Shown here: positions 1 to 38,346 of the stretch, one piece after another | How the letters are laid out: each line of letters starts with the position of its first letter | Position numbering within the stretch: position 1 is the stretch's first letter | From: Klebsormidium nitens | Taxonomy: Eukaryota; Plantae; Klebsormidiophyceae | DNA: 64,000 bases | NCBI GenBank assembly: GCA_000708835.1 | Contig: DF237088.1 | Coordinates: 62,001-126,000 of the forward strand | Reading direction: 5' to 3' | The notes under the pieces: generated by a model | What the model was told of the DNA's origin: nothing | Seen by the model: only the letters and a program-made list of their open reading frames with translations | The model's database searches: none | Translations under genes and position numbers: made by a program

Positions 1-428
1 TCCTTTCAACATGAGGCACACGTGGCCGTGGGCTGAGCTGGTTGACCAATTGGAAGGGAGCAGCCGTGTATACGTGGCCTTCTATGTCACCAACTTGGAC
101 GCATTTACACTTTTGAGTTCCTGATGATGACACCCAGCACTGCAGCAGAGCCAGCCTAGCTGAGCTACTGAGCCAACCTTCCTACAGTAGTATAAATTAT
201 AATTCGAGGTCAGCTCAATTTTCAAAGCTCCAAGAGGTGCACTTGCCCACCATGTGTGTTGTCGCGCTGCCCTCTCCTCACTTGCATGCTGGAACTTGAG
301 GATGTCTTTAGTATTATTAGTCGCTAGGGAGTAGTGCAGGTGCCAAGGTCCTCTGTGCTCTTTCATTCTGGATGGATTGTTCGAATTGCTTAGTGTAGTT
401 GCGCGTACATAACAGTGGGCTTCTTGAA

Positions 429-3400: not shown

Positions 3401-6148
3401 ACGAGAGGTTTGCAATCTGTCCAACTGCGCAAGTGATGGACCAGCACAGTAGCCGAGTCGAAACGAACCACCAGGACTAAACCGTTCCGTTATCATCGCA
3501 ATCGACCGGCGTTTGTGACGGCCTGTAGGAAAAATGACCAAAGCAGTCCGCCTTCTCAGGATGAAGATCGACGCCGTTTATCATTCATCAGAGACATGCC
3601 CTGGTACAGCCCGGCTCAGGCAGCATCTCCTGGCCTTATAGCAATTTCCAGTCACAACTGATCTGAAACCTAGCAAAGGAGTTCGTATTTGTCTAGATTA
3701 ACGGCTATCTTATCCCAATAAAAGACGTGCCATTTTGCGCAGTATATCAGTTTCATTTCGAGCTCTAGCAATTCGGTCGCCTGCCTTCCACTCCAGTCAA
3801 ACCAACGCAGTTTGTTTCATTGTTTTCCCCATACTCACCAAGCAAAGGATCTCACTTCGGTTGACTGCCCCTTTTCCAGGCTGGAGAAGCACGTGCGCGA
3901 CCCTGAGAGCAACCCGCTGCTGATCTTCCCGGAGGGCACGTGCGTGAACAACCAGTACTGCGTCATGTTCAAGAAGGGCGCGTTCGACCTGGGCGCCACG
4001 GTGTGCCCCATCGCCATCAAGTACAACAAGATCTTCGTGGACGCCTTCTGGAACAGCAAGCGGTGGGTGCCCTGCGAGTGTCTCTGCAACTTTTTTGCAA
4101 GCCCGGGAGTTTTACATTTTGTTGCTTATTTGTCTTTGAACAAGAAACGGGGAGAACGGATTGCGGTTTACCTTCGCGTTATGGAGCTCGTGAGAAAAAC
4201 CTCGACTCAAAGCATAAGTGCTGGGGAATTACAGGTCGTAGATGGAGAACTGGTCGGTGACGGTACGCTGGGAAGCGTGGGTCGCTACGTTCATGTCCGG
4301 CGTGCTTAATTTACAAGATTGTGAGCTCCTTTTCGGGAAGCTCTGGGCGAGCCACATTTGTAGAGCTTTTGCCAGCTTTCCTGGCTGCTTTTCGATAGTG
4401 ACGCAACCCTACCGTCTGTATCAGAGGCTGACTCAAAAAGCCGCAGATATATGCTTCCGTCCCCCTCCAAAAATCAGCCTTTAAACGACATATATTGATT
4501 CTTTCATTGCTCCGCACGCCGTGGCGCTGGGCCCGCAAACGACACTACAAAACACCCGCAGTGTCCCGCTTTCCCAGAGTTCTCCCGCTGACGCAATCCC
4601 CCCGTCTTTGACACCCCTCCAGGCAGTCGTTCACAATGCACCTGATGCGCCTGATGACGTCATGGGCGGTGGTGTGCGACGTGTACTACCTGGAGCCGCA
4701 GGCGCGGCGCGAGGGCGAGTCGGTGATCGAGTTCGCGGAGCGCGTGCAGAGCCTCATCTGCGACCGCATCAACATCAAGCGCGTGCCGTGGGACGGCTAC
4801 CTCAAGTACTACCGGCCCAGCCCCAAGCTGACGGAGAAGCGCCAGCAAAAGTTCGCGGAGAGCATCCTCAAGCGCCTCGACGCGCCGCCAGGTAGGGGCG
4901 TTTCGTCCCAGTCGATTGGGCATCGATACTTGACGGGAGCATCCCTTTCTGGTCTCGTTTGGCAGCTTGTCTTTGGCCGAGGAGTGGGAACACCGTGAGC
5001 ACGTCACCACGTTGTTCATCACGTTTTGTGGTATCTGTGGCAGCAGGCCTTGTTTGAACAAGGAAAGTGGATGTGGGCTCTGTTCCTATGGAGGCTGTCA
5101 TTAGAGAGGTTCGGGATCTGGCCTCATCTGTGTATGCACCTTGCTTTAGTGAGCTGGAACATTGCGCACGACGGTCCGTCGAATTGCTGCACCTAGTCCG
5201 GAGAAGCACGCCGCGAGTCCCCTTTGCGTATGATATCCTCACCGTATCCCACCAACCACCCCCCGATCTCACGGTCCCGCAACTTCTGCTTCTCTTCCTC
5301 TTTCTGATTGGAAAGTGCAGCGCTCTTCGAGCCCATAGCACCAACGGAAAAGCACGGTAGAAAAAAGCCCGTTTTAACGTCGCTCGCCCTTAAATGCTTG
5401 CGGTTAATTAAGACCAGCGCTCTGATGTCACTATCTTTCTTTCCCTCAGGACGGGCCAGCAAGTCTGGGATACCGAAGGTGCCCTCCGGCCGTTCGCTCG
5501 GCCTCCCTCCGAGGTCCCCGCCCCGGGACCGGCCCGCAAACGGGGCCACCCCGGACGACCCTCTGTCGAAAGCGTCGCTAGCGAAGTCCAACGCCGCATT
5601 CGAGGTCGGCACAGGTAAGCACCAGAAAAGATGTTTTGTCGTACTCTTGCGAGCATTGATGTAGGCGGGCCCGTGGAACTGAAAGCGGCTCCAGGCGGCC
5701 CGCAGAACTTCGCGATGGACGAAATCGCAGCGCTACCGTCCGATCTGAACATAAGGACTCCAGTCTGCAACGTTTAGTTAGGGGGTCGCAAACTTTGGCA
5801 GGACAGGTTCCAAAACCATGGTTTTAGACAAACCGAGCCTAACCAAGAATAAACGAAAGATCGCGAGCGTTCATTTTTTGACGTCAAAATCTGGACGGCA
5901 GCGCTGCAATTTCTGGTCGTCCCCCAGCCTATCTGTGGTTCTGCGGTCTGCCTGGCTTTGGGTTTCTCATGTTTGTATCGAGCAGACCGTTTGATGTTCC
6001 CTGCCAAAAGGACACGGCGTTTATCCAGATTCGGGAGGGGGTTGCGTGGGAGCTGCCCTCTGTTGACGAAGATATTGATTGGTTTCTGGTTGCAGGGCCC
6101 GACAAGGATGCTGGCACGGGGACAGGTACAGCGCTAGACTACAAGTGA
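429..6148 (+). CDS. GPAT9: Glycerol-3-phosphate acyltransferase 9 (GPAT9/LPEAT-type PlsC acyltransferase), multi-exon
   Basis: Phase-compatible exons: 429-466 (tentative), 830-955, 1141-1198, 1470-1588, 1763-1865, 2222-2317, 2613-2709, 3282-3369, 3880-4062, 4623-4891, 5450-5614, then 6096-6148 (or 5665-5777). The translation contains ELLDI..AIADDSFTRCFKENHPDPWNWNIYLFP, the catalytic NHTSMID (HxxxxD) motif, LLIFPEGTCVNN and KYNKIFVDAFWNSK, all typical of plant GPAT9. First and last exons are uncertain. Confidence 0.93.
956..1140 (+). other. U12-type (minor spliceosome) GT-AG intron in GPAT9
   Basis: The 5' end is GTATCCTG and a TTCCTTGAC branch-point element lies at 1116-1124, 16 nt before the end of the intron. 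There is no long pyrimidine tract. Splicing here (phase 2) restores ...QRPFL|NELLDI. Confidence 0.85.
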
Positions 6149-19640: not shown

Positions 19641-20273
19641 ACGATTGTCCAGCACTAGGTTAAACGCCTCAGTACAAATGGCACGCCACGAGTCATTATC
19701 AATCGGTCTGCAGGGAAGCTCTACCACACTACCGGGACACAAAGCACACTCGACTCTCCTATCATGGACCACATCAAGACCACAGTAGTATATGGCAATG
19801 TGGTTATCCTCCATGGTCGCAGTCATTAGTGAAATCTAGCAAGCGATTCGCAACTAGATTACTTAGTGAGAGAGATTCAAGTGTAGTGTGCGAAAAAGTG
19901 AACCCTACTTTGGTAGTCTAGTGGTAGAGTAGCTTCTCGAATTCAAGGATCGAACTCGTGACATGTCTGTACTGGCCCCCGTTAGGTCCATGGCGAAAGC
20001 TACGTACGGCCTTCTAATTAAAACTTATGAAAATTAAGCAAGCTGCAAGCTCCTCCGACTCGCATGCACGGTCCTGTGTTCAGATGGGAGTCCTTCGCGC
20101 GCTCTCGCTGGTGTTTGCAGAAGACTTGTAGCACAATGCCAATGGGGCAGGATGGCGGCATTGGGAGCCAAACGCAGCAATCAAAAGCATTTCAAATTGG
20201 ACAGGTTGAGACTTAATGCCACCATGCAGCGTGTCACAGTCTGAACAGGATTGAAGCAGAGCTAAAAGAGAGG

Positions 20274-23200
20274 ATGGGCAAGAGTAAGTTTCACAAGTCG
20301 GAGAAGGCTGCGCGAACTCTTAGTTTTTTCCAATCCAACTCAATTGCGCCAGCATCAAGCAAGGTAACACCCGAGAGTAGCTTCCTGCAAGATGCTGTTG
20401 TGGCACGGCAGCTCCTATCAACAGCTGTCTGGCAAGGCAACTTCGATACCCTGATCGATCAGTTGGAAGTCCTGAAGACAGGTAAGATGCATTGCTTGAA
20501 AGAGGAAATCCTTGATTCGCTTGTGTATCTAAAAACCTCCAACACATGTACAGGTGTGTGCAATCTTGAGGAACAATACTACGATCCTGCCAAGGAACTT
20601 GGCAGAAATCTGCTTTAAAAGTCTTGGCCTATCATGAAGTGCAGAGACCAGAGAGTTGCACACAATGGCGCGACCCCACTGCACAATGTGCTTGTGTGAT
20701 TCTCTTGTCCCAACTTTGCTTTTCCATGCGCTCTCTGGGTCTTCTTCCCTGCACTAGGACTGCTGAGCTACAAACTCTACCCAGAGTCAGGCTTGGTGGC
20801 AAGGTTTCCACTGACTACGTCGTGCCAGTGTACTGAGTGTTTGATATCTCTATTGCGCATGCAGGTGATGAAGCCCGATGCCTGGCAGCGCTCAACAAGC
20901 TCACCTCAGACAAAGCTCTGCTAGCATCTGTGGCAGCAGTTGAAAGCTTGACGGAGCAACTTGCCAAGGAGCTGCACAACCTCATTCTTGCCAGAAGCAG
21001 TGGCAAGAAAGGCAAGAGCGGAGCCACAGCTTCGAATAGAAAGAAGACCTGTGTTTCAACAGAAGCAAGCAGTCCAGTCAGCAATGGAGTCCAGCCTGGA
21101 GAGAAGACGACCACCACTGCTGCCTCCGAGGAGCCAGTGCCTGTATGCAAAAAGGAGAATGACAAAGCGCTTTCAGCGCAGGTCGATTGCTGTCCAGAAG
21201 AAGAGGAGGTTGATGACAGGATGGGAGCTCCCAATTATTTCAGTACAGCTCGCGAAGCACCGGAGGGATCTGAGCCTGAAGCATCTGCAACAAAAGACAA
21301 CCCCCTCAACAAGTTACTGGAAACACAGGGATGCACCACTGCGGATCTGCAGAAGATCTGCAAGCAATCTCCCGTGGAGCTGGTTTCCCAAACAGTGGCT
21401 ATGCCAGTAAGTACACGTGTTAATGCCAAGCTGCTAAAAGCGGAAGGGCCTCAACCTAGTTCTTGACAGAGAGCGAAGCTGGATGTACAAAAAGTAGAGA
21501 CAGTTGTACAGAATATTTTCTGTTTATGAATGATCACCAGTTGGTCAGTCTAGATTGTCGGCCTACCGCATCGCCATAGGGACAGTTTTCGATCGACACT
21601 TTGTCGCCGAAGGTCAGGCTTTTGCTTCCTCATAAAGCATTCAGCGGTGGACAACCCCTGAAGCAATCCTTTTTTTCTATCTTGCAGGGTATTTTGGTGC
21701 CATCTCCGGGTCTGAGGCTCCTTGGATCGTCAAAGGCTTTGGCTCTGATATCAGCTCCTGAGAGCTTGGAGATTGCTCCCATCTTCATTGCCAGCCGAAG
21801 AAGGGCAGATGTAGCACACTTGAATCTGGCAGTGCCATGGATGCTAGCAGACAAGAAGCATGTGGTGCTTTTAACAATCGAGCCCTCAGATGTGAGCTTC
21901 GAACCAGTGCCACTGATTCTCGCTGCTTTTGCAGTCGGTCATCTTGAACCATGCCTATTTGTGTTTGTTGGTCCACATCTTTCTGTCGCCTGTCTTTCCA
22001 AGTCGTGTACCTTCTATTTCAGCATCATTTATGTGATTTTAAAATGCATTTTACCTAGAGGATGTGGATTAGTCAAAGGCTATAGGATCTAAGAAGGCAG
22101 CTTAGCTGATCAATATATTGCTAGATGTTGGGGAGAAATTTTTATCTGATGTTGTGCTCTTGCTTTGTGCAGGAAGCAGCATACAGGAAGTGGGCCGAGC
22201 AGTCCGAGAGGCACATCCTTGTCGTGCTGCCAGAAGATGGACGGGGCATCGGATACGCAAGACGTTGGATACAGGATGTTGCTGCTCACCTGAAGCTGAA
22301 AAGATACTGGCAGGTAAGTCCCATTGAGAACTTTGCAAGCTGTGCTCCTGCCGCAGTGACGTCTTGGGAAAACTCAATGGTCTGGGGGCGGACACAAAAA
22401 GCTCAACACACGTCACATCTTCTGCCGTTAGCTAGGCAAGTTCTTCAGCAGAACTGATTTCGCATACATCAGGGGTGTTACAGGGAGAGGAGCATCTATA
22501 CTTGCCGGCCAAGATTGTTTTGGAAGACAAGCATACTCATTTGCATTCTTAGTATTGAGTATTAGGAGAAAGTTGTCCTGTCCCTCTTTAATGCAGATGG
22601 ACGATAACGTTTGTGCCATTCGAGACCAGGACGAGATCATTCCTGCCCATCGTGTCATGGAGCTCCTTCAAGGCCTAGAGCCCCGCTCTTTGATCAGCGT
22701 GGTGCATCCTTCCTGCAAGCTTTTCGTGTGGTACCCGGTGAGTTTTCCAGCGTGCTTCTTCTTGGACCATGGCCATCTTCTACAAAGCAAACCTTCTGTT
22801 TTTTGAAGCAGCTTCTTGTGCCCTTTGGTGTTTACTCTTTCTGGGGTGTATATTTCAACTCCACCAACAGTCGATGAGTGCTTTGCAAACATTGTAAACA
22901 GTCGGCCAATGTAATTGTATCTGTGAAGAGGTTTGTCGTCGTTGTGAGAAGGCCTATGCTGAGCATGCCTCACCTGCTATCTGCAGATGGTGCTTCTCTA
23001 CACACCGCTCAAGTCCCCACGTTTTAAGGCCGTGTTCAATGAGCGAGAGCGGGTGGCTGACGCAGAGTGGGTGGACTTCACCGAGCAAGTGCACGCTATC
23101 GACGGGCCCCTCATCCACGACAAAACGCCCTGCTGGCTGGTTCCTTATCAACCGGGCTATGTTGGCGGATGGGGCGTTCCGGATGTGAACGGGGAGTCCG

Positions 23201-26200
23201 CCCTGCCGTTCCACAAGTACGAGTCGCGCGAAGAAGTCGCGCTCGGGGCCAGGATGTGGTACACCCGTTCCTGCTTCTTCGGCTCGGGGCACTTCGACCG
23301 GGAGGCGATCCAGAAAGCAGTCCCCAACACCGTGCTTCAAGCAGTCTACGCCCTGCTCGACGTTCTTGTAACCGTGTGCCACGAGATCTGGGTCGAAGGC
23401 CGCTACCACACGCTGGTGCCCTGGCCGCTCCATCCCTTGGTCGAAGCGAGCCTGAAGCTGAACGGTCAGAAGTGGCCTAGCCGTGCCGTCTACAACCTGC
23501 TCGGGATCTTCAAGGATTTGCGCAACGTGGCGGCGAAGGACCCGGCGCTCCTCAAGTGGTGGTCGGAGGTTGGGTGGCGGCTGCTCGACGGATCGGAGAA
23601 GTGGCAAACGAAGACTAGCAGCCCGATAGTGTCGACGAAGGGAAAGGCGGGATCCCAGTCGAAAGCTGCGTCCTCTAGCCCGGCGAAAGTGGGGGCTGCG
23701 GCAGCTCCTCGGAGCGGTTCCCGGGGGCAGAAGACGCAGACGGATACGGACAAGGCGGAAAGGGCAGAGCCACAAAACGGAATGGAGAGAACTGGTGATA
23801 ATACCGGAAAACAGGAGCAGACGAGCGCAGGGGCTGAAGGAGGTTTTAAAAAGGAGGATGCTGAAGAGAGGACGGATGCAAGCAAGGCCAAAGGCGTAGA
23901 AGCACAATCAGGAGCTGGGCCAGGGGTTGCACTCAAGAGTTTCGAAGGTGCAGTCACTGAAGTCAAGGCCCCAAGAATAGCCCGAAGAAAGGGGAGAGTC
24001 GGCTCGGACGTCCAAGTGGCCACCTCCGAAACTCCAGGCGTCGGAACCTCCACAGAGAAGGAACCGGAGCAGGATTCCGTCAAAGCTAGTCCACCTGCAG
24101 AAAGCGTGACAGTGGACGATTCCAAGCCTGTAGCGGAAGAAGCTGTTTTAGAAAGCAAGGAGCTTGCGGTATCCGGGGCCGTGGGGAAGCCAGTCGAGCA
24201 TCCTCCGGGCTCCGCTTCGGGAGTGCTAAGCGAGAGCACGATTGCGGGGGCAGTCGAGGCCTGCCAGCTGTCAGCCGCAGCGACTGAGCTCCTCTTAAGG
24301 TCAACGAAGAACGTCGCAGGCCTTGTCGTCACTTTCCTGGAGGGCGAAGGTTATAAGATGGCCTCGCAGAACGGGACGCAGAGGGTCACGGTGGGCGATT
24401 CAGGTAGTCAATATGCGAGAGTTGCGCACTGGAGGAAGCAGATCACGATGAATTATTGTTCTCGCATCAAAGCAGCTTCCCTGGCTCAATGCAGCCGCTG
24501 AATCTGCCCTTTTGTTATAGCGGCCCTCCTGCCTCAATGTGGCCGCTGAGGTTGTCCCATGCTGTGTTGCGTCTATGTAGACGTCTAGATTTGGTTTAAA
24601 AGTTTACGTCGATTGTCGATCTTAGTGCCGCTCCTGGAGTGCACCCAACTTGAAAGCAGCTCGTTTCGCTGGTTCTAACATCGCCTCCTCGCTTCTGCAG
24701 TATCGCGCATACTCTTCAAACTCTCCCCGACGGCAACTTCGCCGGCACTTTGTACACTGCTCTTCCTCACCTTGTCCCTGTACGCTGTGGACGTCGACTC
24801 CGACAAGGGACTTCTGCTCCAATACTGCAAGCTAATTGCAAGCCGAGCGGGCCTCTTTGAGAGCTTGTATCTCAGCAGCTTCATCTCTTACGTCTGTATC
24901 GCTGCGGTGAGTATGATGGATTTCTCTTTTAAGCAGTACCGAAGCTGCAAGCCATATTCATTGTGAATGGGCAACTCATCGCTGTGCCGTCGATTCAAAG
25001 TGCACCATGAATCTTACGCTACCAATCAAAGAAGCAGCGTCGCTTTTTACATGACCATCGAGCCAAGTCCTGCAGACTAACCTTATCAGTTTGTCTCCTC
25101 GTCTTTTCAATTAAGCTTTATCCTTGCGAATAGTTGCAGTAGATAAGGCTCCCTTATGTCCGTGGCCACTCGTAGTCGTACAATCTAGTCGATATAGTGG
25201 AACACTTCTGGGGTCCTCATAGACCGCTTGTGAGAGTTACTGCACGAGTCCTCTGGTCGCGGCAGTTGTCTGAGATTAGCAAGATGTGTGCAGGCTGCGA
25301 ATTTGCGGGAGGTCATCATTCAGCGCGCTACAATCCAAGCCCTGTCCAAGCTGGTCTCCTCCGCCACGGACATCGACGGGATTCACGCCTTGCCAGCTGT
25401 CATGGGGGCGATGGCTGCTCACCCTCAAGACGTCCAAGTCCAATACCTGGGTTTTTCCTTCCTCGCCGACCTAGCGAACATGGCCTGCTCAAACCGGCGG
25501 TGGATGATGGCGGTGCTTGGAGCAGCCTCTTCAGCGACAGCCGCAATGGTTCTAGGCCGGGGCAACGAGAGCATGCAGAAGAAAGGCTGCCGCCTCATCC
25601 GGATACTTGCAGAGTCTCTCCTGTCTAAGCCGGATTCGACGGGTACGGTGACGGATGCAGCGAAGACGGAGCAGGAAGATAGATCCAGAAAGGTTTCTGC
25701 TCCTGCACTCGTGCCGCTGCATAGTCCTGACTCTGCCTTAAAGCGCTCACGAAGGGGGACAAGATTCATTCAGACCTTCGACGACATCTTCTCTGCCGTT
25801 CGGAAGGCGTTGGAAAGTTCTCCCGGATCGACCGAACAAGTGAAGAAAGACTGTCTTATGAAGCTGATGGCATACACGAACAGTGAAACAGCGGAGCTGA
25901 TTTTCTCCTCTCTCAGTGATTACGCGTCCGCGGTGTTGACCGGCCAAGTCGAGCTTCCCCCTTGGCGCGAGGCCGTCTCAGCAGTTTTCCAGGCTCTGAA
26001 GTCGTTCCCGCGATCAAGGGCAGTGCAAGAAGAAGGCCTCGCAGCCTTGGCCGAGCTGCTTCAAGGCCCCTCCTGCAGGGCCGTGTGCCACACTTTCCAG
26101 ATTCTCCGGGATTTCTCCAACCGGGAGAGCGCATCCCAGTGCTTCATGCTGGACGATCTGAGGGGGGTGCTTGTAAGAGTGGCTGTCAATTTCCCTCAGG

Positions 26201-29200
26201 ATTTGCAACTTCTAGGCTCGTCGGTCAAGTTGCTCAGGCAACTCTTTGAGAAGCAAATACCCAAGTTCGTAGCCTATCCCGTCACAGCCGTTTCCTACTA
26301 TCAAGAGGCCCCCCAAACCAAGTCTTCTCCCTTCTTCGTGTCCACGTATGTGCCCACGACTTCGCACACAGAGCGGCTGCCAAGGTTAGGCCCGAAGTTT
26401 GCCCCGTGGATCACCAGCTTTGATGGCACTGCTTGTAGCCTGTCAGCGCCCGGCCATCCTCTTTGGACAGACAGCTTCCTCGAGTTCCCTGAGTCGTTGA
26501 TGACCCGCCCCTTGTCTCAGTACTGGAACCAGCACAGAGCAGGGCTGAAGTCAAAGAAGCAGGATAGAAGTCAGCCGGCAACTCCGCCCGATCCCCCTGT
26601 GCTTTTCAGCAATCTCTGCGAGGCTGAAGCATACTTCAGCTCGGAATCGTTTGCGATAGCGCTCCAGAGCATGCAGCCTCACTGCAGGGCAATGGCAGTT
26701 GAGTTCGTCAAGCTGGTAAAGTCCTTAGTGGCAGCTATAGCAGCATTGGAGGCCGTTGCAGTACCACCTTCGGAGGCCGCGAAAGACGTAAGTTGCCTCT
26801 TATTTGTTTTGCCGGAGGTTTTCTAGCGTTTGCGTGATAACCTTAGCAAGAGTCTTGCCATTGCTTTTCGGCAGCTTGCCTTTTGTGCCTCCAATTTTTT
26901 CACTCTTGATAGATTTTTTTAGAAAGCGGCAGGACAAGTAATATACATCGAGGTGGGATAAAACTGTTCTGAAATCTGGTGAGTTTGATCTGGTGCAGCC
27001 TTCTCGAAGCGCGGTTTGCTCAGTTCATCTGTGCAAAACTTTCATGGCACTTGCAAGTCTTCGTCGCTTTCTCTTTGTGCAGGCTAAGAACGAAGAAGTC
27101 CGGCTAGCGGAGCCCTTCTGTGCAGAACTGGACCTGGTGGAGCCGGCCTGCGTTCTCCTGGAGGCAACGGAGAATGTTCTGTTCAGCGCAACGAACGAAT
27201 TGAAGATTGCCTTGAGCAGCGCGGCTGCGGCGAGCGAGAAGGCGGCAGGCAACGAGAGTGCTCGGGAACGGTGGCAAAGCTTCGTTGACGCCACGGAAGC
27301 AGGGCGGGATGAGCAGCGGAAAGCAAGGGACGAGCTGCGCGAAGGTGGGAAGGCTAGCGATGAAGGCTCTCCTTCGAACGATGAAGGGCAGGCACGATCA
27401 GAGGAAGTTGAGACGGTGCCAGGGGGAAGCCAAGCGGCCGTCGAGGGGCCTGCTAAGGAGCCGGGCTCGAAAGAATCAAGAGAAGAAAGCAAGGAGAGTT
27501 CTGGAGAAGCTTGCAAGGCGCACGCACTGAGCCCTGAAGAGGAGTCGCTGTTGAGTGAGCAAGCGGCAGCACTCGTTTCAAGCCTGGCAGACCTCTGTCA
27601 ACTTCCGGTGGCGCTTCGGAAAGCTGTGCAAGCCCTTAGGCCTCTTCTGACAACAGCACGTGCCGCCGAAACAGTAGCTTTGGCTGCATATGTGCTGTCC
27701 TCAGTGTACTCAGCTTGGAGCCGGTTGGAGCCGGCACTAGTTGGGGAGATGCTAATCGACAGGCCCTGGTTCGCGGCGTTTGTTCCACCCCGGTGTGAGA
27801 AGCTGCTCGCCGTCAGTTGGAAGGAGTCGGGGGTCGTGGAGCTCTTCGAGATTCTAGAAACCTGGGGCGAGACGGAAGAGAAATGGACTGCCGCACCAGA
27901 AGATGCAAGACATCAAGTGGTAGCAGCCGTCCATGCTTTCGCGTCCCTTTCGCCGACTTTCTCCACTGATGCATCGGAGCTCCTCGCATCGGGTGGGTTG
28001 CCACGTGTGTTGTCAGGAGTGGCTGCTGCTTTGCATGTGATGATGGGCGAGCCAGACCAAGACACGCAAGACTTTTGCACGGGGGCCATGATTCTTTTGG
28101 CGAAAAACCACCCGCGCGTCCTCACACGGGGTTTTGCTGGTGCTTGGCTGGAGGACTTGGTGAGTAGCCTTCCTGTCCACCGGTCTCAGAAAGTGCACGA
28201 TCACTTCGACATTTGTATATTGGAAACTGTGAAAATAAGAGAGATTTCTGCAGATTGGCAATGGTGCCCTGCTAGCTCGTTTGGTTGTCGAGCATGCATT
28301 ATAAGCAATGCAGACTCCGAACATTGCTTCACACTGTTCGTTGCTTTCATTGAAGGTCAAGGTTCTTGCCTGAGAAGTCTAAAACAATCATTGCAACTCG
28401 GCCCCTAGCTATGCACCCTTCTTCAGCATGTACTTAGGGGGTAGGGACCCATTCCAACTACCTTTGATTCCCTTGCAGGAATCTTGTCTGGCGGTTCTGA
28501 GGCTGCTGACGCAACCTGCCGCGGCCGCGGACCGCAGCTGGGACGTTGTCTCCACCTTCCTCGACGTTCTTCGCACCAAGCGCAGCGACATCCACCGGCT
28601 CGTCAAGAAGCTCAAGCGCGGGAGCAAGCAGGGCGCCAAAGACCTGCGGGACCTGATCCCCGAAACGCCCGCAGATGTGCCGCTGACGCTGCTGAGGCTG
28701 CGGTCGGAGAAGCTCTGGGAGGGGGGTCTGAGCGGGGAGGGGCGACTGGAAGAGCTGTTTCCACTGGAGGAGGTCGCCTCGCGCCTCTTCGAAGCGGTCC
28801 AAAAAGCGGCGGTCAAAAGAGCGGGTGGAGAAGCGGCCGGGACCGGTGGCAGCCCCGAGAAAGCGGTCGAGCGGCTTCAGGATGCGGCCGCCTCGCTTAC
28901 GTCATCGACAAACGGAGGGAACAGTCAGCCAAACCAGACGGCGGCCGAAGCGCCAGCAAAGCTTTCTCCCAGGGGGGACAACCGGTGGACCGCCCTACAG
29001 CCGCTGTTTGACAGCTGGGCTCAGCCGGTCGTTTGGGACGCGGCCTTCGAAACGATGGTGATAAAGTGCGGGGAGGAGGTGAAGGGCGGGCCGCCGCTCG
29101 GGCTGTTCCGGACCTGCCTTCTGGAGTGCATGGATTCGGAGGCGCTGGTGTTCGCGCGGGAGCTGACCCAGAAACTAGCCGACGAGCCTTCCCCCGGCCG

Positions 29201-32200
29201 AAACCTGAGGGCGCTCTCCCAGCTGTTTGCCGTGGTCGGCCACGCGGCGCGGGACCGGCCGGAAAGCGCTGCGGTCTTCATTGCGTCTGGCCTGGTATCG
29301 GAGATCGGTATAACGATGACCCGGTTTGCGCCGGGGGGCGAGGCTTTCAGCGGAGGTGAGGAAGTAGAAGGGGCGGAGGAGCGGCTGGGCGATCTGCAGA
29401 GGGACGGGGGCTTTGCGCTGTCTGCAATTCTGAGCAAAGCAGCGGCCGAGCGGAAGAGCGGGGAAGCAGGAGAGCGCCGAGTGCTGACGCAGCTGCTCGA
29501 GAGCTGTGAGGACGCCACCTTCGAGGTCCTGCAGTCGGCTTACTGGAAGTACACCCCGGCGGAGCTCCCGGAGGGGGCTGCGGAGGCAGGCGTTTCGACC
29601 CCCCTGGAACGAGCAGACTTGGGGGAGGGCGGAAAGGTGCGGCCGAGGAAGGACGTGAGGGACGCTGCGCGCATGGGGCTGCTGAATCTGCGCGCCCTTC
29701 TCCCAGAAACTTCCCCCAAGTTCAAGGCGATATCGAGCCTGTGTCTGGCGCATGATGCCATTGTCGCGGATCAAGCAGAGGTGGGAGTCTTCATCTGATC
29801 GTTCGACGTGCGACTTTGTGCAGCAAGACACTTGTTGTCTGCCTGTCCACAAACAGCAAACGGCATCTTTCTAACACTGGGTGTCCGATACTTCCTGCCG
29901 CTAGTCCAGAATCCTTCTTTCCTGAAGGTCCTAGACTTCTACGGTGCTGGCAAAATTTCGAGCTGGTTTTCCTTTTTTTTTTAACGTGGACGCAGACTCC
30001 TTAAATGGTCCTTTCTGTCTGACATCAAGACACCGTCAAGTGCCCTTCGGAAAGCTTTGACGATTCAAAAGAAGCCATGACTGTCGATCACCACTCCGTT
30101 TTTGTGTTGTGCAATGCCACGTTCAAACTTGTCTTCCCAATGACAGTATCTGCTTCTCTGCAGGCGATGGCGCTCGTGACCCGGGCTGACTGCCTTCAAG
30201 AGGATGGCTTCGACCGCTCTGCGGCCTGGTACTGCGACTTCTGGAAGCGGGACTGGTTGCTGCCCTCGGACCTGCCAAGCACGGAAATCGAAACCCCCTC
30301 AGCCGCTGATCTGGAGCCAAGCAAGGCGACTGCAACGGAAGCAGAGTCCGTCCCTTTCGATGAGACAACCACTGTTCCTGGTCCGGAAAGCGCAGTGGAA
30401 GCCACAGCGGAGCCTGCCGAAGCGGGGGGAAGTGGGGGATCCCCTCCGAACCAGAGCGCGTCCGAGCGCGGGGTTTCTTCCATAGTCAGCGGAGGAGGGC
30501 AGGATGCCGACGCCCGGGGCAGCGCCGAGCTGTCTGAGCCCCAGCAAAAAGAGGTTTCTCAGGAACAGGCACTTCCTCCCGACCCGAAGCAACTGCTTAT
30601 TGCCCAAGTAAAGGGGTTCGGTTCCGCCGCTGTGAGAAAGGAGGCCCGTCTTGGTGAGGAACAGAAAGCATCCGAAGCAGAACTCAACGAAGATCGGCAA
30701 GTGGCTGCGGTTGGTCCTTCAGAAAGCAGTCCAGGGGGGCTAGATCCAGAAGCACAGTCTGCTGGTGCTGCTGGCGGGGGGGATGCGATCGCGCCGTGCA
30801 AAAAAGCGTCCAAAAAGAAGAAGAAAAAGAAGCAGAGCAGGCAGGCAGCTGTGGAGTCCAAAGAGGTTCAGCCGAAACCTTCGGAGGGCAGCAACGTGCC
30901 CTCGCAGCCCGGAACCTCGGTTGACCAAGCTGAGAATCCCCAAAGCCCTGAGGCGGCCTCTCCCAGTGAGCTGGAAGCGGGGTGTTCACAAGAAGCCAAG
31001 CGGGAAGAAAGTCAATGTCTCTCCTCCGGAGCACCAAGGGAAGGGGCGGAGGAAGCAGCGGTCAGCTCGCTCCTGAAGGAAGCTGCATCAATTCTGGAGC
31101 AAACTGGGGCGCCGCTTTCCCAAACGGCTCCACGCTCGAAGTCGGTGACGGAGTCTGCTAAAGCGATGGACGCTGTGAGGGAACTCGTGAGTCAGTTGCC
31201 ACCTGCAGAGCGTCCTTTGCAGACTGCGTTGGAAGAGCTGATGGCAAAGGTGTTCAGCTTTGCCACAAAGTGTCAGGAGCTGAAGAAGGAGACTGTCGAG
31301 CAATTCGTTCCGGCAGTCGGTGCTTCTTCGCGCGCTACTACAGAGACCCAGGGACGTGCAGAGGCAGACGGTCAAGGGGAGCTTGTTCATAGGAGCCGGT
31401 TTGAGGGAACGAAAGTCAAGTGGTTTGAAGGCATCCGCTTGTTGCTCGACGAAGGCGAAGAGCTGCTAGAGAAACTCCGACGCTTCCTTCGGGACCCGTC
31501 TTGGGGACCAAAGGTCAAGAGCCATGAAGTCATCCATTTGTCGCTCAACGAGGGCGAAAAGGTGCTGAAGAAACTCCGGCGCTTCCTTCGGACCTTAGCG
31601 GAGGGAAAGGGGAAAGATCCGGTCAGTCTAGCGAAGGCGTTAGGAAATTACTTGAGCGGAGGGAGCCTGCGGGAAGGGGAGAAGGAGCCGGAAGTGACTC
31701 AAGGAAGCGCCAAAGGGAGTGCGAAAGGCCCAGAAGGGAAGAAGGCAATGGCGGGCGTGGAAATGGTGTTCGAATTCGAAGAGGGGGCAAGCTCGGCAGA
31801 CGACGCTTTGAACATTGCCCCGTTCGTCTTTGGAAGCGCGTCGGAGTCGGTCGCGCGGGCTCAGAAGGAGAGGGTGCGGAAGCGGCGGACGCAGAAAGGA
31901 AAGAAGGGTGGCGCCGAGGAAGGGGAGAAACGCTCATCCATTCGCGTGCTGCGGTCGCCGGGCCGCTCCATGCAGCTGGCATTCTGGGCCGAAGGGAAGC
32001 ACTTTGCGGTGCAATTGCAGAACGGTGGCAAGGAGGAGGCAGGGCCGCCGCTCACGAGCTGCGCTTTGCTGGAAGATTTAACGGGGCGGAAATGGACCCT
32101 CCCACAGAACGTCAGCAGCGCCCTGGTGACGGTGTCGAGCGACGGCGGCGCAAGGGACGGCAGCGAGACGTACCTCTGGGAGCCGGAGAATGCGCGCGCG

Positions 32201-35200
32201 GGCCGGGCGGAGTCGGTGCGGAAGGTCTCGGCGGAGGAGGCGGAAGCTTTGAAGGGGGCGGGAGATATGTCGTCAGAAGGCCAGGAGCTGGGGAGCGGGA
32301 CGGGGGAGGGCGCGGTCGAATCTGAGGACGCAGCTTCGGGCGGGAGGAAACAGCCAGCGGATGATGAGATGATCGAAGGGAGCGCCGCGCAGAAACCAGA
32401 GAAGGAAAGCGTGGGGTGTAGTGATGACGTGGCGGCGGTGGCGGGCGCTTTCAAGCGAAGCGGAGTGGAGATGCTGCAGCAGGGAGTGCCTGTGAGTGCA
32501 GACGGAGAAGAAGCGGGGGCTGGGAAGGATGGGAGAGGAGCGCAGGAGCTAGGGCGTGGAGAAGAGCCAAGCGTTCAGGTCGAGGGGAAGAACGGAGAGG
32601 CTTTGCAATTGGGAGTGGAGGGCAAAGAAGCGGAGGCAAGTTGGAACTCCGAAGGAAAAGAAACGGCCGGCGCGGAAAGGAGGGGCCTAATCGGGTCGGA
32701 CGAGATAAGCCTTCTCCAAGTTACTTCGAGTTCCGAAGAGACGGGCGCTGTTCCTGGCGCAGAACTGACGGATGGCGGAACAGGGAGCCTCCGGAAGGAA
32801 TTCGAGCGGAGCGACAGCGCTACGGCTGGTAGATTGGGGGCCATCAGCGGAGTGATGTCTACGCTTGCAGGATCTGCCCACCGTAAGGATCGCGCCCTGG
32901 CTGAAGATCGAGGAATGGACAGAGTTTTTGAAGCTTTTCTAGTTGTCAAACTTCTGCTTCTGCCCCGCAATCTTCCTCCTAAGTAGTTTTCACCTTCAGG
33001 GGCTTTCTTAAATTCGGGTTTTGTCCGAGGAATTTCAATGAATATTGCAACTTCTAAGGTCGGCGATACCAGCAGCATGCTCTGAGAGCACTTTGATCGA
33101 GAGCATGTTGTCGTTCACAGAGATCCACTCTGCTGATCTCTGTGTGTGTTTGCTGTTGATCCTTTCGTCAATTTGAGCTCATAAAAAGGGACTTCGGTCT
33201 GCTTCACTTCTTCGGTCTTCAACTGAGAAACGTTTAGGACAAAGTCTATACCCAGCGCCATCGGTTGGAAGTGTCGCTATGTCATTTCGTGTTCAAATGG
33301 CAGGCTCTGGTTTAGGAGGAGCACTTCAACTTTTCAGCTGGTGTGCCTTCCTGTTTACTTCGTTGCTCATTGATTGCTCACGACACACCGGTTCTCTGCA
33401 GAATCGTCTTCTGAATCCGACGTCAAAGGAGTCGCTCCCGAGGCTGTAGAAGACCCGCTACGCATGTCCGAGCCGGCGCAGTCAACAATTCAGAGCGAAG
33501 AAGACGTTGGCGAGCCAGCAGAGCCTGACGAGTTCGCTGTCCTGCTCGGGATGCTGAAAGGGGAGGGGCCCGCGGCTGGGAAGTCCTCTCTTCTGGAAAG
33601 CGGGGCGTCGGAAAAGCTGCAGTCGAAGGGACCTCTGATTGGAGAGATCGAGAAGATGGAGAAGCTAGCCGAGAAGACTTTGCCAGTGCCCCTGACGGAA
33701 GAGGTGGTGGTTGTTGCGCCGGTTTTCGCCAATCCGATGGGCTCCGCTCTGCTGGTCGAAGAGAGTCCCGGGGTGGGAGGGAGTGCTGACGTCGAAAGCG
33801 GAGGAGCTGACGTGGCAAAGCGGGATGCTGAGAAGACGGAGCTTGGTCGGAGCGTTCCAGGGGGTCTGAGCGGAGCGGCTGAATCTGGTCTTGACCCTCT
33901 CGAACCCTCCCGAGAAAGAGAGCAAACTCACCCCGGGGCTGGAGTGGTAGAGGTACAGGAGGGCCGGTCAGAACTGCCAACTGGAGGAGGGGAGGGGGAG
34001 AAGGGTGAGCTCGGACAAGCGGCGGCCGATCTTCCTGAACCGGTGTCAAAAGAAGCCAACGGCGGGGAGGGGATAACGGCTGATGTCCTGAACGAGGGGA
34101 CCGGAGAGGTGAACGGAGTCCCAGAGACAGCGGTTGAGACGTTAGTGGAGGAGTCTGGCAAGGTGAGCGGAGGGGCAGAGACAGCGGCTAAATCTGAAGA
34201 AGCGGAGTCGGGAGAGACAAGTCGGGGGTCAGAAACAGCGGCCAATGTTTCGGCAGTGGAATCTGAGGAAGCGAACAGGGGTGTGGAGTCGACGGCTGTG
34301 ATTTTGCAGCAAGGCCCTGAGGAAGGAAAGCGGAGAGGAGGGACAGGGTCTGAAATTCTGGAAGGGGAGCCGGGGGAAACGACTGGGGGACCAGGGACAG
34401 CGGCCGAAGTCGTGACACCGGAAGGCGAAGCGGCGGAATCAGCGGCTAACCGTACGGAAGCGGAACCGGAACAGGCGAGGGCGGCGTCGGACACCTTTTC
34501 GGACGTACCCGACTTTGTGTCCGAGCCTGACGACGAGGCCTGGTTCGACGCGACGGACGAAGAGTGCGACGAGCCGTCGCCGCGGGTGGCCAAGGGCAGA
34601 GCGGAACTGTCGCCGGAAACGGACGGAGCGGAAGGGCGGACTTTCGAAAGAGGAGCTGCGGGGAAGGAAGCGGAGCGGGGCGAAGTGGTGAAGGAGGAGG
34701 TGGAAGATACGGAAGTGGGCGAAGCGCAAAACGCTACTGGAGACGAGGTGGTCGAGAGTGCAAATGGGGTTGCTTCAGTGGAGGTCCCAAAGGCGCAGCC
34801 GGACGGTGGAATGGAGCAGAAAGCGGAGCCAGGAGAAGTGGAGCAGAATGAAGCTGAGGGGAAGACGGTGGGACTGGAAGAAACAGCCCGTGAGGCTGAC
34901 GACGCGGCGAAAGAGAAGGTTGGAAAGGACGCAGAGAAGCGGGTTGAGGCCCCAAAAGACGCAGAAAGGGAGGTGGAAGGTGACGAGAGACTGTCAGCTG
35001 CGCCTCTGTCTGATCTCGCCAAAGCAGCAGGGTCCGTTGGCGGAAGCAAGGCGACCGGAGAACGGAAGACGGAGTCTGAGGGCAGGGAAGGCGCAACAAA
35101 AGAGGAGGGGGAAACTAGGAGGGCTGCAAAGGGATCTGAGGTTTCAGGCGGGACATCTGAAAAGATGGTTGCAGTACCTCTGAGAGGAAATGACGAAACG

Positions 35201-38200
35201 GCGGCAACCGGCGCTCAGGACGGTGAGGGGTTGGACGGTGAAGCTGGGCGGGCGGCAGATACGTGGGCAGTGGGTGCGTCAAAAGGGGTTCAGAATGGCG
35301 GTCCGGATGAGAGGGGCGGGGCAGATTCGGACGTTCCGGACTTCGTCTCCGACGAAGAATCAGAGCCAGAAGAGAAGCCGGAATACGCGGAGGCAACGAG
35401 CGGCTTGCCAGCGGATCCGAAGGCAAACGGAACGGAGGAGCGCACGCTGCCGGCAGCCCCGAAACTGTCACGGAAGGCGGACGCTCTGCCGTCGGCAGAG
35501 CTTACAGCAGTCATTCTGCCGCTTCCAAGGAGCTCTTCCGCCGGAATCCTGCCGCTTCCGAGGAGCGCTTCACCCGGAGTGCTCCCGCGGCCCAGTTCTG
35601 CGGCGGGAGTTCTGGAGCGCCCTAGCCCTCCTGCGATTCCGGTTCCGCCGGCTCCGCCGGTCCCAGATGACCTGCCGGACTTCGTCTCCTCGGGCTCGGA
35701 AGCGGAGTCGTCTGAGGAGGAGAATGGCGACACCACAGCTGACACACGCGGCCTGTCTGGTCGCCTTTCTCGGATGCCGGCACCAGCGGTTGGACTTCTC
35801 AAGTCACTGCCCGAAAAGCGAGTGAAGGAGCCTATTCCGCCGGGATTGGAACGCCCTGGACGAACCGGAACGGTGCGAACAGGCGAACGGCGGGAACAAG
35901 TCAGATTCGCCGCCGAAGTGACGAGCCCGCTGGAGCAGCTCCGTCAGGGGACGTACCAGCCCCCGCGCGTGCGCACGTCGTTCGTCGCCCAAACCCTCGA
36001 AAACCCCGCGAGTCCGCCCCTTTCCCCGCCACCGGGCCCCGAGCCGCCGGCCTCCGAACTAGAGGAGGGGGATTTTAAGCCCGGGGACGATGACGTCAGC
36101 GACGCTGACTCCGAAGGGTGGGTGACGCTGGGCAGCGAGCACGGCGGCGGTCACGACTGGCGCCTCGCACGTGACCTGTACGGAACGTTCCCCTACGAAG
36201 CGGGCTATCGCAGCCTGGCCACTAGCGCGGAGAGCAGCCTGAGTCCGCCGAAGCGGCCGCTGAGACTGAGCCAGCAGGCCGCAGGAGTGGCTGGCGGCGG
36301 AGGGAGCGCGGGACTCGAGAGGGCCCAGGCTCCGGTCGGCGCGCGACTGGGATCGGTACAGCAGCAGAAAATCGGACCCGGTCTCAATCAGGTAAGAAAG
36401 CAAGCTAAAAAGGTTTTGGTCCGCAAGCTTGTCCTCGGAATCGAAGTAGGATTCGCGAACGGTGGACGTTGCCTCCTCTATCGTGATGGGTTTTCTAGGG
36501 CGTTCATTCCGGCAGCTGGTTTTCTAAAGCCTTGAGGTGCACACTTTTAAAAACGGTGCTGAGAGCTGCCCTATGGAAGGGCATCGCCTTTAACTCCATT
36601 TTGAAGATACGCCTTTTGCTTGACTTAGGTTGCTGTTGACTTAAAAGGATTGACAAACGTTTCCAAGATCGCTAACGACCAGACAGTGTGCCGCTCCCTG
36701 CTGACCGCGTTCCGCTGCTCTCCGCAGGCTAACATCAACGACGGATGCTGGATCGACGTGGTACCGCGCAAGAAGAAGGCCCAGCCCCCTTTGCGCCCCG
36801 GCCAGGACGTGCGCATCATGGAGGCCCAGTACTTTTCGGAGGCACTTCCGGCAGCGCCCCGCGCGCATGCCAGGAAGAAAGTTCGTGGCGGCAGGAAGGT
36901 GCCGCACAGGCAGGCGGAGCTGAGGCACGCTCGATTGATGTCTGGTGAGAATCTTGAGATCTTGCGGCTTTACTTGGGCTAACGGATCTTGGCTAATGCA
37001 AGACGAAGTTGAGTTTAATAATGACATAGGTTGCTGTGCGCTCAGTCTTTGCGATAGAGGGTCGAGCGCAGGAGTGGATACACTGCCATCAAGCTGACCG
37101 TGGTGGATGGATATGCTGGGTGCTATGTGGGTTCCTGAACTTCTTGACCTCTTGTTTCCTTCCAGCCCAAGAGGCATTCTTGATGTTCACCTTGAACAAT
37201 AAGAAACTGCGCTGCTCAAGTTGCGGACTCGCTTTTGCGCAGGTACTCAGACCATCGCCAACTCTGTAGCAATTTTCTGCAGGTGCTGCACAGCTGCCTC
37301 TTCCCCCCGGCATTCAGCCCCATGCCCCGCGCCCTGCCGCTCTGCTCCACCCCAACCTCGGCCTCGCAGCCGCGTTCCCCCCGCTTCCCCCCCATCCAAA
37401 ACGCGCACAAGCGCGCCCCCAGCCGCCTTTGAACTCCCAAAATCCAGCGCGCACCAAGGCGAACACCGGCAGGCAGTACGTTCCGGCCAATACCACTTGG
37501 GCGGACATTCCGGACCCGTCCGATTCCGCAACGGACACCGGAACCCCGCTGGTTGGACGCCCCACGCACTCCCCGTTGGCTACTGAGGAACCCCTGGGAA
37601 GGAGGCGCGCTATTCCGGACCCCAAGTATCAGTTTCCGACTGAGAGACTGGCCCTGCAAGCGGGGCTGCCCAATGAGATCACTCGACAGGAGCCCCCCTC
37701 TCGCGTGGCACCTCGCCAGTACGCACCGTCCCTGCACGGGCCGTCGGCAAAAGCGCGGCCGGCAGCGCTCGGCGGGTTCCTGGGGGGGCACGTGTCGGAC
37801 AGTGGGCGCGCGGAGCAGCCACGTGCGACCCGGCAGACGGCGCAGTACTTTTCGGACGTCGAGGGAGCGGGGGTGGACCCACGAGTGGTGGAGCTGATTT
37901 GCTCGGCGGCGGACGTCCGAGCTCTTCGATCACAAGAGCGTGCAGCCGCCCCTTCCCAGCTAATTGCACACCCGCAAGTTCCCCCCGTCGGCAGACCCCC
38001 GAGGAGCCCCCAGAAGCAGAGGACCGACGCCGCCCAGATCGGCCGCCGGGCGAACGAGCCGGTTATGGTCCGGGCGGAGAGCATAATCAGCGACGAGGGT
38101 GCGGGTCGGCCACAAAAGGCGGCGAAGCGGCGGCAGGCGGAAGAGGAAGCGGACGACGCGTACTGCTGCATCTGCTTCGAGAACCCCAAGAACGCGGCGC

Positions 38201-38346
38201 TGTCGCCGTGCGGGCACCTGCTGTGCGTCGAGTGCGCGGGGGTCATGCACAAGACTAGGAAGACCTGCCCGGTGTGTAGCAAGAAGATTGAGAGCGTGCT
38301 CAAGCTGTTCGACAGCGCGATCAGATTGCCAGCTCATCTGAGATAG
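20274..38346 (+). CDS. Giant (~4,588 aa) protein: GREB1/JGT-like glycosyltransferase domain + ARM-like repeats + acidic disordered region + C-terminal RING
   Basis: 14 exons joined by 13 phase-compatible GT-AG introns: 20274-20481, 20865-21406, 21688-21891, 22173-22313, 22597-22737, 22987-24403, 24701-24906, 25294-26787, 27083-28159, 28479-29780, 30164-32828, 33402-36391, 36629-36944, 37283-38346. Total 13,767 nt, divisible by 3, with no internal stop seen. Confidence 0.8.
21778..23169 (+). other. GT-A fold glycosyltransferase domain, GREB1 C-terminal / TET-associated GT / JGT-like (split across exons 3-6)
   Basis: Spliced sequence: PIFIASRRR..HLNL..HVVLLTIEPSDEAAYRKW..HILVVLP..GIGYARRWIQ..YWQMDDN..MVLLY..EWVDFTEQVH..YVGG. 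Motif order matches the GREB1/JGT family as I recall it. Confidence 0.72.
25294..29780 (+). other. Armadillo/HEAT-like helical repeat region of the giant protein
   Basis: Recurrent units such as VMGAMAAHPQDVQVQYLGFSFLADLA, VFQALKSFPRSRAVQEEGLAALAELL, VRVAVNFPQDLQLLGSSVKLL and FIASGLVSEIGITMTRF..LQRDGGFALSAIL. Confidence 0.6.
31412..31591 (+). repeat. Intragenic tandem duplication, 99-nt (33-aa) period
   Basis: KVKWFEGIRLLLDEGEELLEKLRRFLR versus KVKSHEVIHLSLNEGEKVLKKLRRFLR, with matching DNA similarity (aaactccgRcgcttccttcgg in both copies). Confidence 0.85.
35513..35628 (+). repeat. Short coding tandem repeat (ILPLPRSSSAG-like, 4 degenerate copies)
   Basis: ILPLPRSSSAG ILPLPRSASPG VLPRPSSAAG VLERPSPP. 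Confidence 0.75.
38164..38277 (+). other. C3HC4 RING finger at the C-terminus of the giant protein
   Basis: CCICFENPKNAALSPCGHLLCVECAGVMHKTRKTCPVC = C-x2-C-x11-C-x-H-x2-C-x2-C-x10-C-x2-C, followed by KKIESVLKLF as in terminal RING E3 ligases. Confidence 0.93.

Follow-up and report, generated by a model that had tools for sequence, protein, structure and literature searches.

This report concerns a single gene in a 64,000-nucleotide stretch of the genome of the streptophyte alga Klebsormidium nitens (contig DF237088.1, positions 62,001 to 126,000 of the forward strand; this whole stretch is termed 'the window', and its own numbering is used throughout). Profile comparisons support that positions 21778-23169 encode a glycosyltransferase (GT) domain of the TAGT family (PF20691), distributed over exons 3 to 6 of an expressed, multi-exon gene of which RNA data confirm the splicing. 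The best explanation of the locus as a whole, to which we assign a probability of about 0.6, is that this domain is located close to the N-terminus in a RING protein of ~4,500 residues and that its likeliest acceptor would be a protein. Known TAGT enzymes include those of phages, where they take part in DNA hypermodification, the kinetoplastid enzyme of base J and GREB1 of animals; proteins resembling the latter have been listed in many eukaryotic groups, green plants and green algae not being among them (PMC7968844), and a full-text search of the literature returned no paper that links Klebsormidium to the TAGT/GREB1-like family. The gene represents a new architecture within a known enzyme family, to which its homology is firm. 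Should the domain prove active, the gene would provide a tractable streptophyte system in which to study the role of TAGT enzymes outside of DNA-modifying phages and animals.

Splicing, expression and family assignment

The exon model of the gene was rebuilt from the DNA letters; all of its introns are of the GT..AG type, the reading frame is kept throughout, and all of its exons lie on the plus strand. The initial annotation of the window had proposed that exons 3 to 6 splice in frame into a domain resembling GREB1 and the base-J glucosyltransferase (JGT), and the spliced translation contains each of the peptides that it gave. Four RNA runs, each from a different study (X1, X4, X8 and X9), yielded contigs that were mapped on 20201-26200 and join these exons exactly as proposed: the joints 20481/20865, 21406/21688, 21891/22173, 22313/22597 and 22737/22987 are found in Logan RNA contigs with zero mismatches, at depths of 25-113. 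Twenty public RNA runs contain 12-65% of the sequence words of 20200-24600, and 18 of them contain 57-65%, in agreement with an exon fraction of ~0.6. In one X4 contig 21404 is joined to 22170 (with ends CA..TG and a shorter arm of 26 letters), so that exon 3 would be left out, and low-depth contigs from X1 and X4 (depth 4-5) retain intron 3 (21863-22199). Minor isoforms, pre-mRNA or artefacts of assembly account for these contigs.

The proposed domain runs from P281 (21778-21780) to G473 (23167-23169) of the spliced protein, which matches 21778-23169 exactly. The last 38 codons of exon 3 (21688-21891, the domain starting at 21778) encode strand 1 (IFIAS), R289 and strand 2; exon 4 (22173-22313) encodes the nucleotide-sugar-binding core, with Y322, the strand HILVVLP, the motif GIGYARR (containing R348) and the strand RYWQ; and exon 5 (22597-22737) begins with M-D-D-N, a DXD-type motif for binding of metal and UDP-sugar (D367 and D368 at 22600-22605, N369 at 22606-22608). 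The first 61 codons of exon 6 (22987-23169) form the proposed end of the domain, with D442 at 23074-23076 and the pair G472-G473 at 23164-23169. It had been claimed that the adjacent aspartates arise only across the 22313/22597 junction; that junction does link RYWQ to MDDN, but both aspartate codons lie wholly inside exon 5.

The assignment to the TAGT family begins with exon 4 alone, which (although only 47 residues long) matches Pfam TAGT and no other family (E-value (E) 3.7e-4, or 1.6e-4 with a few flanking residues), at a score of 20.9-22.1 bits that lies under the gathering cut-off of 27.5. The same exon matches PHROG 842, the beta-glucosyl-HMC-alpha-glucosyltransferase of phage T6, at E 2e-5, and its nearest clusters in the ESM Atlas are all TAGTs, at a weak score of 0.80. 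The T6-type second glucosyltransferase has itself been placed in the TAGT family (PMC13390438), and the T6 enzyme (ggt) scores 35.8 bits on the Pfam model. A hidden Markov model (HMM) restricted to the T6 subfamily returned only 6.3 bits (local hhalign against the same subfamily, E 0.008), and a broader family set was therefore needed; it consisted of T6 ggt and 69 relatives, nearly all carrying PF20691, of which 67 went into a first HMM; a second, of 70 proteins, was built after the TAGTs from the metagenome scan described below had been added. The first HMM gave the spliced protein a score of 27.8 bits (single-target E 9e-11; model positions 4-87 on residues 282-373), in an alignment that spans both the exon 3/4 and exon 4/5 joints, and the second gave it 38.4 bits (single-target E 5e-14; positions 4-88 on residues 282-374).

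Scores on the 67-protein HMM climb as exons are joined, from 12.8 bits for exon 4 to 24.3 for exons 3+4, 20.3 for exons 4+5 and 32.8 for exons 3+4+5. As had been anticipated, a scan at the level of open reading frames (ORFs) overlooks such a domain, since each exon by itself falls short of the Pfam cut-off. The spliced stretch scored 31.5 bits, against a maximum of 1.7 among 1000 shuffles, and hhalign of the algal sequence and its orthologue against the family gave a probability of 95.5 (E 1.5e-8), or 97.2 with the 70-protein set, over 181-186 columns. On these sequence comparisons, residues 281-373, the nucleotide-sugar-binding half, are clearly homologous to TAGTs. The proposal of a GREB1/JGT/TAGT-type domain is thereby borne out statistically from strand 1 to the aspartate pair, but not for residues 374-475, which give no significant signal; across all profile searches TAGT was the sole family matched, with no better match to an unrelated one.

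The closest relative was found by a scan of IMG/VR with the exon 4 alignment, which led to phage contig UViG_3300036806_000210 (L004). A single ORF of 569 residues on that contig (941-2647) fuses a Tet_JBP dioxygenase domain (1e-23) to a TAGT domain (105 bits). The spliced algal domain matches this ORF by BLASTP at 64.7 bits (E 4e-16, 35% identity over 113 residues, from strand 1 to the aspartate pair), including a near-identical KLKRYWQ-x-DDN stretch; around the pair, 12 of 13 residues are shared. By phmmer the algal domain scores 47.2 bits against the L004 ORF, as compared with 39.3 bits for the best match of L004 among the 67 other TAGTs. Used as query against viral sequences, the TAGT domain of L004 retrieved nothing beyond L004 itself; a metagenome scan found two stand-alone TAGTs that carry the stretch L-P-E-D-G-R-G-I-G-Y-A-R or a close variant of it. 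In a phylogenetic tree the algal sequence and its orthologue group with L004 (support 93/77), a placement that is given little weight because the branches are long and the loci were fished with the algal sequence.

The fold of the family was approached through a relative. A PDB sequence search with exon 4 gave nothing meaningful, and a TAGT profile gave only weak matches to GT2 enzymes among PDB sequences (E 0.08-0.12), which indicates that no TAGT structure has been solved. An AlphaFold 2 (AF2) model of the T6-like TAGT P0003 (mean predicted local distance difference test score (pLDDT) 93.4) finds GT-A enzymes as its top PDB matches (RmlT, WrtF, TarS, TarP and K4CP), and its top matches in AlphaFold Swiss-Prot are human GREB1 (residues 1544-1785) and then GREB1L. 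By this model of a T6-like reference, the TAGT family is of the GT-A type and related to GREB1, in line with the initial annotation; the predicted strands and helices of the algal N-terminal half coincide, through the alignment, with elements of the P0003 model. 

Could the likeness nevertheless reflect chance, or some other Rossmann-like fold that is not a glycosyltransferase? The single-exon Pfam scores do fall short of the cut-off, and the modelled fold is that of a relative. However, four independent tests (Pfam, PHROGs, the custom HMMs and hhalign) agree, a pairwise match of the strength found to L004, with its shared stretch around the aspartates, is to a bona fide TAGT, and shuffled sequences stay far below the observed score; on the Pfam model even T6 ggt reaches only 35.8 bits. 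We regard this explanation as very improbable.

Host protein, active site and acceptor

The earlier gene model, in which exon 6 was read to a stop at 24501 to give a protein of 916 residues, does not hold. RNA contigs show that exon 6 (22987-24403) is spliced at 24403 (joint 24403/24701, in four runs), and continue through 24701-24906 and from 25294 onward in the same reading frame; the gene is therefore much longer. A GT-AG chain that joins the large downstream ORFs predicts a full coding sequence of 13,530 nucleotides and 4,509 residues, with a stop at 38346, and single RNA contigs of 14,362 and 13,206 nucleotides fit the predicted length of the mRNA (the longer would leave ~470 nucleotides of 3' untranslated region under this model). 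Near the end of the chain a C3HC4 RING finger is encoded at 38155-38298 (Pfam zf-C3HC4_3, E 2.4e-13, 50.1 bits against a cut-off of 27). From the predicted in-frame exon chain and the lengths of the RNA contigs, we infer that the GT domain and the RING finger are part of one polypeptide.

Characterised TAGTs use UDP-sugars. By analogy, the algal domain would bind a UDP-sugar together with a divalent metal and would transfer the sugar with inversion, as do GT2-like GT-A enzymes. A protein acceptor is favoured because the domain appears to be part of a giant RING protein with ARM-like and long disordered stretches, and because a Pfam search of the exons and large ORFs of the gene revealed no Tet_JBP dioxygenase, no helicase and no module for DNA binding. 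In the fullest form of this proposal, O-glycosylation of serine or threonine would be physically coupled to ubiquitin ligation on one polypeptide, in the spirit of GREB1; we hold this coupling tentatively, at somewhat short of an even chance. Catalytic activity, sugar donor and acceptor are all matters on which we infer rather than observe.

The residues that such an activity would require are largely present. In a MAFFT alignment with 67 TAGTs, the near-invariant or invariant positions R289, Y322, R348, D367, D368, D442, G472 and G473 are all kept. R289 (21802-21804) occupies an arginine column that is 97% conserved, within a context (I-F-I-A-S-R-R-R) in which the consensus proline and tyrosine of the I-P-S-Y-x-R type motif are replaced. 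D442 and the glycine pair fall on family-invariant columns and are separated by 30 residues, as compared with 31 in the T6-like P0003 and, by our count, in L004. The C-terminal motifs named at the outset (VDF..Q and GG) thus stand in the correct position, but are not significant by themselves; their order and spacing leave these matches plausible but unproven.

Conservation points to the same core. An exhaustive search of 1.84 billion representatives with 215 residues of exon 6 found one true relative, P0001, at 62% identity. (A second candidate, P0002, a repeat-rich protein of 1,653 residues in which six near-identical domains occur along with a proline-rich spacer, was rejected as spurious, since only a short hydrophobic stretch, repeated six times, had matched exon 6.) Two genomic contigs of this orthologue (L001 and L002, from runs SRR14092360 and SRR14092359) have the same intron positions and the identical 141-nucleotide length of exons 4 and 5, and the orthologous exon 4 also matches Pfam TAGT. 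In that exon 41 of 47 residues (87%) are identical, as against ~40% over most other parts of the protein, so that the GT core is the most constrained part seen; such a pattern indicates probable purifying selection.

A number of observations weigh against the reading of an active enzyme on a giant RING protein. The aspartate pair aligns with a DDD motif that is 100% invariant in the 67 TAGTs, and its third position is asparagine in the alga; an arginine that follows the glycine pair in 91% of the family has no algal counterpart. Residues 374-475 score -3.3 bits on an HMM of the C-terminal half (within the range of shuffles), and the C-terminal halves of the alga and L004 show no significant likeness, 63 of 500 shuffles attaining the observed pairwise score. 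The orthologue shows a shift of the frame by 1 nucleotide within a run of G near the start of exon 6, at the same place in both contigs (L001:1340-1365), because of which the gene caller began P0001 downstream; a genuine pseudogenising mutation, an allelic variant or an assembly error common to both contigs may be the cause. Evidence of conservation is thin, P0001 alone among the 1.84 billion representatives appearing to be orthologous. The joints beyond 25294 are predictions without read support, and the GT-A fold was modelled on the T6-like reference and not on the algal domain. Finally, a protein acceptor is made less likely by the fact that three of the four characterised activities of the family are exerted on DNA and that the nearest relative to emerge is an enzyme of phage DNA modification. 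The weight of the finding is limited accordingly by its very narrow distribution (the only apparent orthologue being the closest homologue found) and by the unproven acceptor half.

Several of these points would be explained if the domain were a degenerate GT-like module that serves a giant E3 ligase as a UDP-sugar sensor or as a structural or recognition domain. The acceptor half, which is ~22 residues shorter than that of a T6-like TAGT and not detectably homologous to it, would fit such a role, as would the change from DDD to DDN, the missing arginine and the orthologue's frameshift. Yet R289, Y322, R348, D367, D368, D442 and the glycine pair are all in place, and no part of the protein is better conserved than exon 4. 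The DDN variant is kept in the orthologue (as MDDN) and also occurs in the phage L004 fusion, whose TAGT domain matches the Pfam model strongly; moreover, the adjacent aspartates targeted in the catalytic-dead mutant of GREB1 are only two, D1645 and D1646 (PMC7968844). An inactive module accordingly seems unlikely to us, and it ranks behind a DNA substrate among the rivals.

A DNA substrate is the foremost of these rivals, though it too is unlikely. Here the enzyme would, like JGT or the phage TET-associated enzymes, add a hexose to 5-hydroxymethyluracil (hmU) or 5-hydroxymethylcytosine (hmC) made by a separate TET/JBP dioxygenase, and the RING protein would act on chromatin. DNA is the substrate of T6 ggt, of the phage TET-associated enzymes and of JGT (PMC7968844; PMC8256090), the algal pair groups with L004 in the tree, and the setting of L004 itself is suggestive: over 116-5403 that contig encodes, in order, a ParB_N-like protein, the Tet_JBP-TAGT fusion, and the small and large terminase subunits. 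Phage dioxygenases that are colocalized with a ParB homologue have been predicted to be T-dioxygenases (PMC13229309), and the L004 neighbourhood resembles that setting, here with the sugar transferase fused. Set against this are the caution attached to the placement in the tree, the lack of any detected Tet_JBP, helicase or DNA-binding domain in the algal protein, and the apparent presence of ARM-like repeats and a RING finger on the same chain, which points to protein substrates. The association with a TET/JBP dioxygenase, which is typical of TAGTs but not universal (T6 ggt and GREB1 are without it), was not found within the gene.

A combined form of the two ideas, in which a GT of the phage TET-associated type that makes base-J-like DNA has been built into a giant RING ligase, so that one polypeptide would both attach sugar (to hydroxymethylated bases of DNA or to proteins of chromatin) and ubiquitinate targets nearby, is a long shot; if true, the green lineage would thereby gain its first case of DNA glycosylation of the base-J type or of protein glycosylation of the GREB1 type. 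What remains of the probability, after the protein acceptor coupled to ubiquitination, the DNA substrate and the degenerate module, is taken up by other acceptors or by chance resemblance.

Remaining features of the gene

Exon 1 (20274-20481) holds the start codon, and its donor joint to exon 2 is found in four RNA runs. An in-frame stop lies at 20214, within the RNA-covered stretch, and the first ATG thereafter is that at 20274, which is therefore the first usable one. Exon 2 (20865-21406), joined on both sides by RNA, encodes a low-complexity N-terminal region (residues 70-250) that gave no Pfam match. Just upstream of the gene, at 19905-19965, is a stretch with a partial tRNA look (D-arm- and T-arm-like motifs); ARAGORN called no tRNA in 18000-40000, and the stretch may be a tRNA-derived repeat fragment.

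Immediately after the GT domain, 23170-23631 encodes a conserved orphan region (residues 474-627) that is predicted to be helical and is 57-62% identical to the orthologue. It has no Pfam or ESM Atlas match, and an AF2 model of it from two sequences reached a pLDDT of 46, which is unusable. The remainder of exon 6 (23632-24403) is, by its composition, a low-complexity and probably disordered linker. Long antisense ORFs, of 317 and 280 residues, overlie exon 6 (22954-24332, minus strand); the codon composition on the sense strand of this exon most likely accounts for them.

Exon 7 (24701-24906) is joined in frame by RNA. Exon 8 (25294-26787) has a start that is seen in RNA and an end that is predicted from a GTAAGT donor; it gives a weak ARM-repeat signal (Pfam ARM_LRRK2, E 0.0037, below the cut-off). 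Exons 9 to 13 (26999-28159, 28479-29654, 30164-32882, 33402-36445 and 37270-38346) are predicted as a stop-free, in-frame GT-AG chain and are mostly of low complexity. Across 28000-36500 the G+C content is 0.58-0.63, the skew towards purines is strong (as much as 0.23 for GC skew and 0.30 for AT skew), and the translation consists of long, low-complexity, probably disordered stretches in which no Pfam family was found.

Comparison with known systems

The L004 fusion, the nearest relative, shares with the algal domain a similar E-x-VDFT-x-Q stretch that is followed ~30 residues on by a pair of glycines. In its organization it is quite different: the phage gene is intronless, encodes 569 residues with a dioxygenase domain of its own, and lies beside a ParB-like gene and terminases, whereas the algal domain is interrupted by three introns, has no dioxygenase that could be found, and belongs to a host protein of ~4,500 residues with, apparently, a RING finger at its C-terminus.

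T6 ggt (L003:7141-7923, minus strand) likewise carries Pfam TAGT, displays the same order of landmarks (strand 1 with its arginine, then Tyr, Arg, DD, Asp and GG), and has an N-terminal half of which the secondary structure aligns with that of the alga. In contrast to the algal domain, it is a stand-alone protein of ~280 residues that extends glucosyl-hmC on phage DNA, with a DDD motif, a longer acceptor half and a GGCS..R motif that the alga is without.

JGT glucosylates hmU in DNA downstream of JBP1/2, and we know of no JBP-like gene in the genome of K. nitens. Among the matches of the TAGT model to clusters of the AlphaFold database are Q4CRM6 and S9WIU2, which we take to be kinetoplastid proteins. 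JGT has been assigned to the same GT family as GREB1 (PMC7968844).

The GT domain of human GREB1 and GREB1L, the best structural match of the TAGT model in Swiss-Prot, belongs to the same fold family. GREB1 has been reported to be a cytoplasmic protein O-GlcNAc (O-linked N-acetylglucosamine) transferase that acts on ER-alpha, where the mark blocks the E3 ligase ZNF598, and its catalytic-dead mutant alters an arginine near strand 1, a histidine, the two adjacent aspartates and a later aspartate (PMC7968844). Going by that description of GREB1, the alga presents its arginine, H332, D367/D368 and D442 in the same order. The domains that surround the GT differ between the two proteins. In GREB1 an N-terminal zinc-binding domain and a circularly permuted, inactive helicase of superfamily 2 precede a C-terminal GT (PMC7968844), and there is no RING finger; in the alga the GT is N-terminal, the ARM-like, disordered and (by the exon model) RING regions come after it, and Pfam gave no match to GREB1, a helicase or a zinc domain upstream or downstream of it. 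Because the architecture of zinc domain and permuted helicase is absent, the algal protein is, on this comparison of domains, not a GREB1 orthologue. Its apparent RING fusion would, however, permit a direct test of the coupling between glycosylation and ubiquitination, which in GREB1 takes place between separate proteins.

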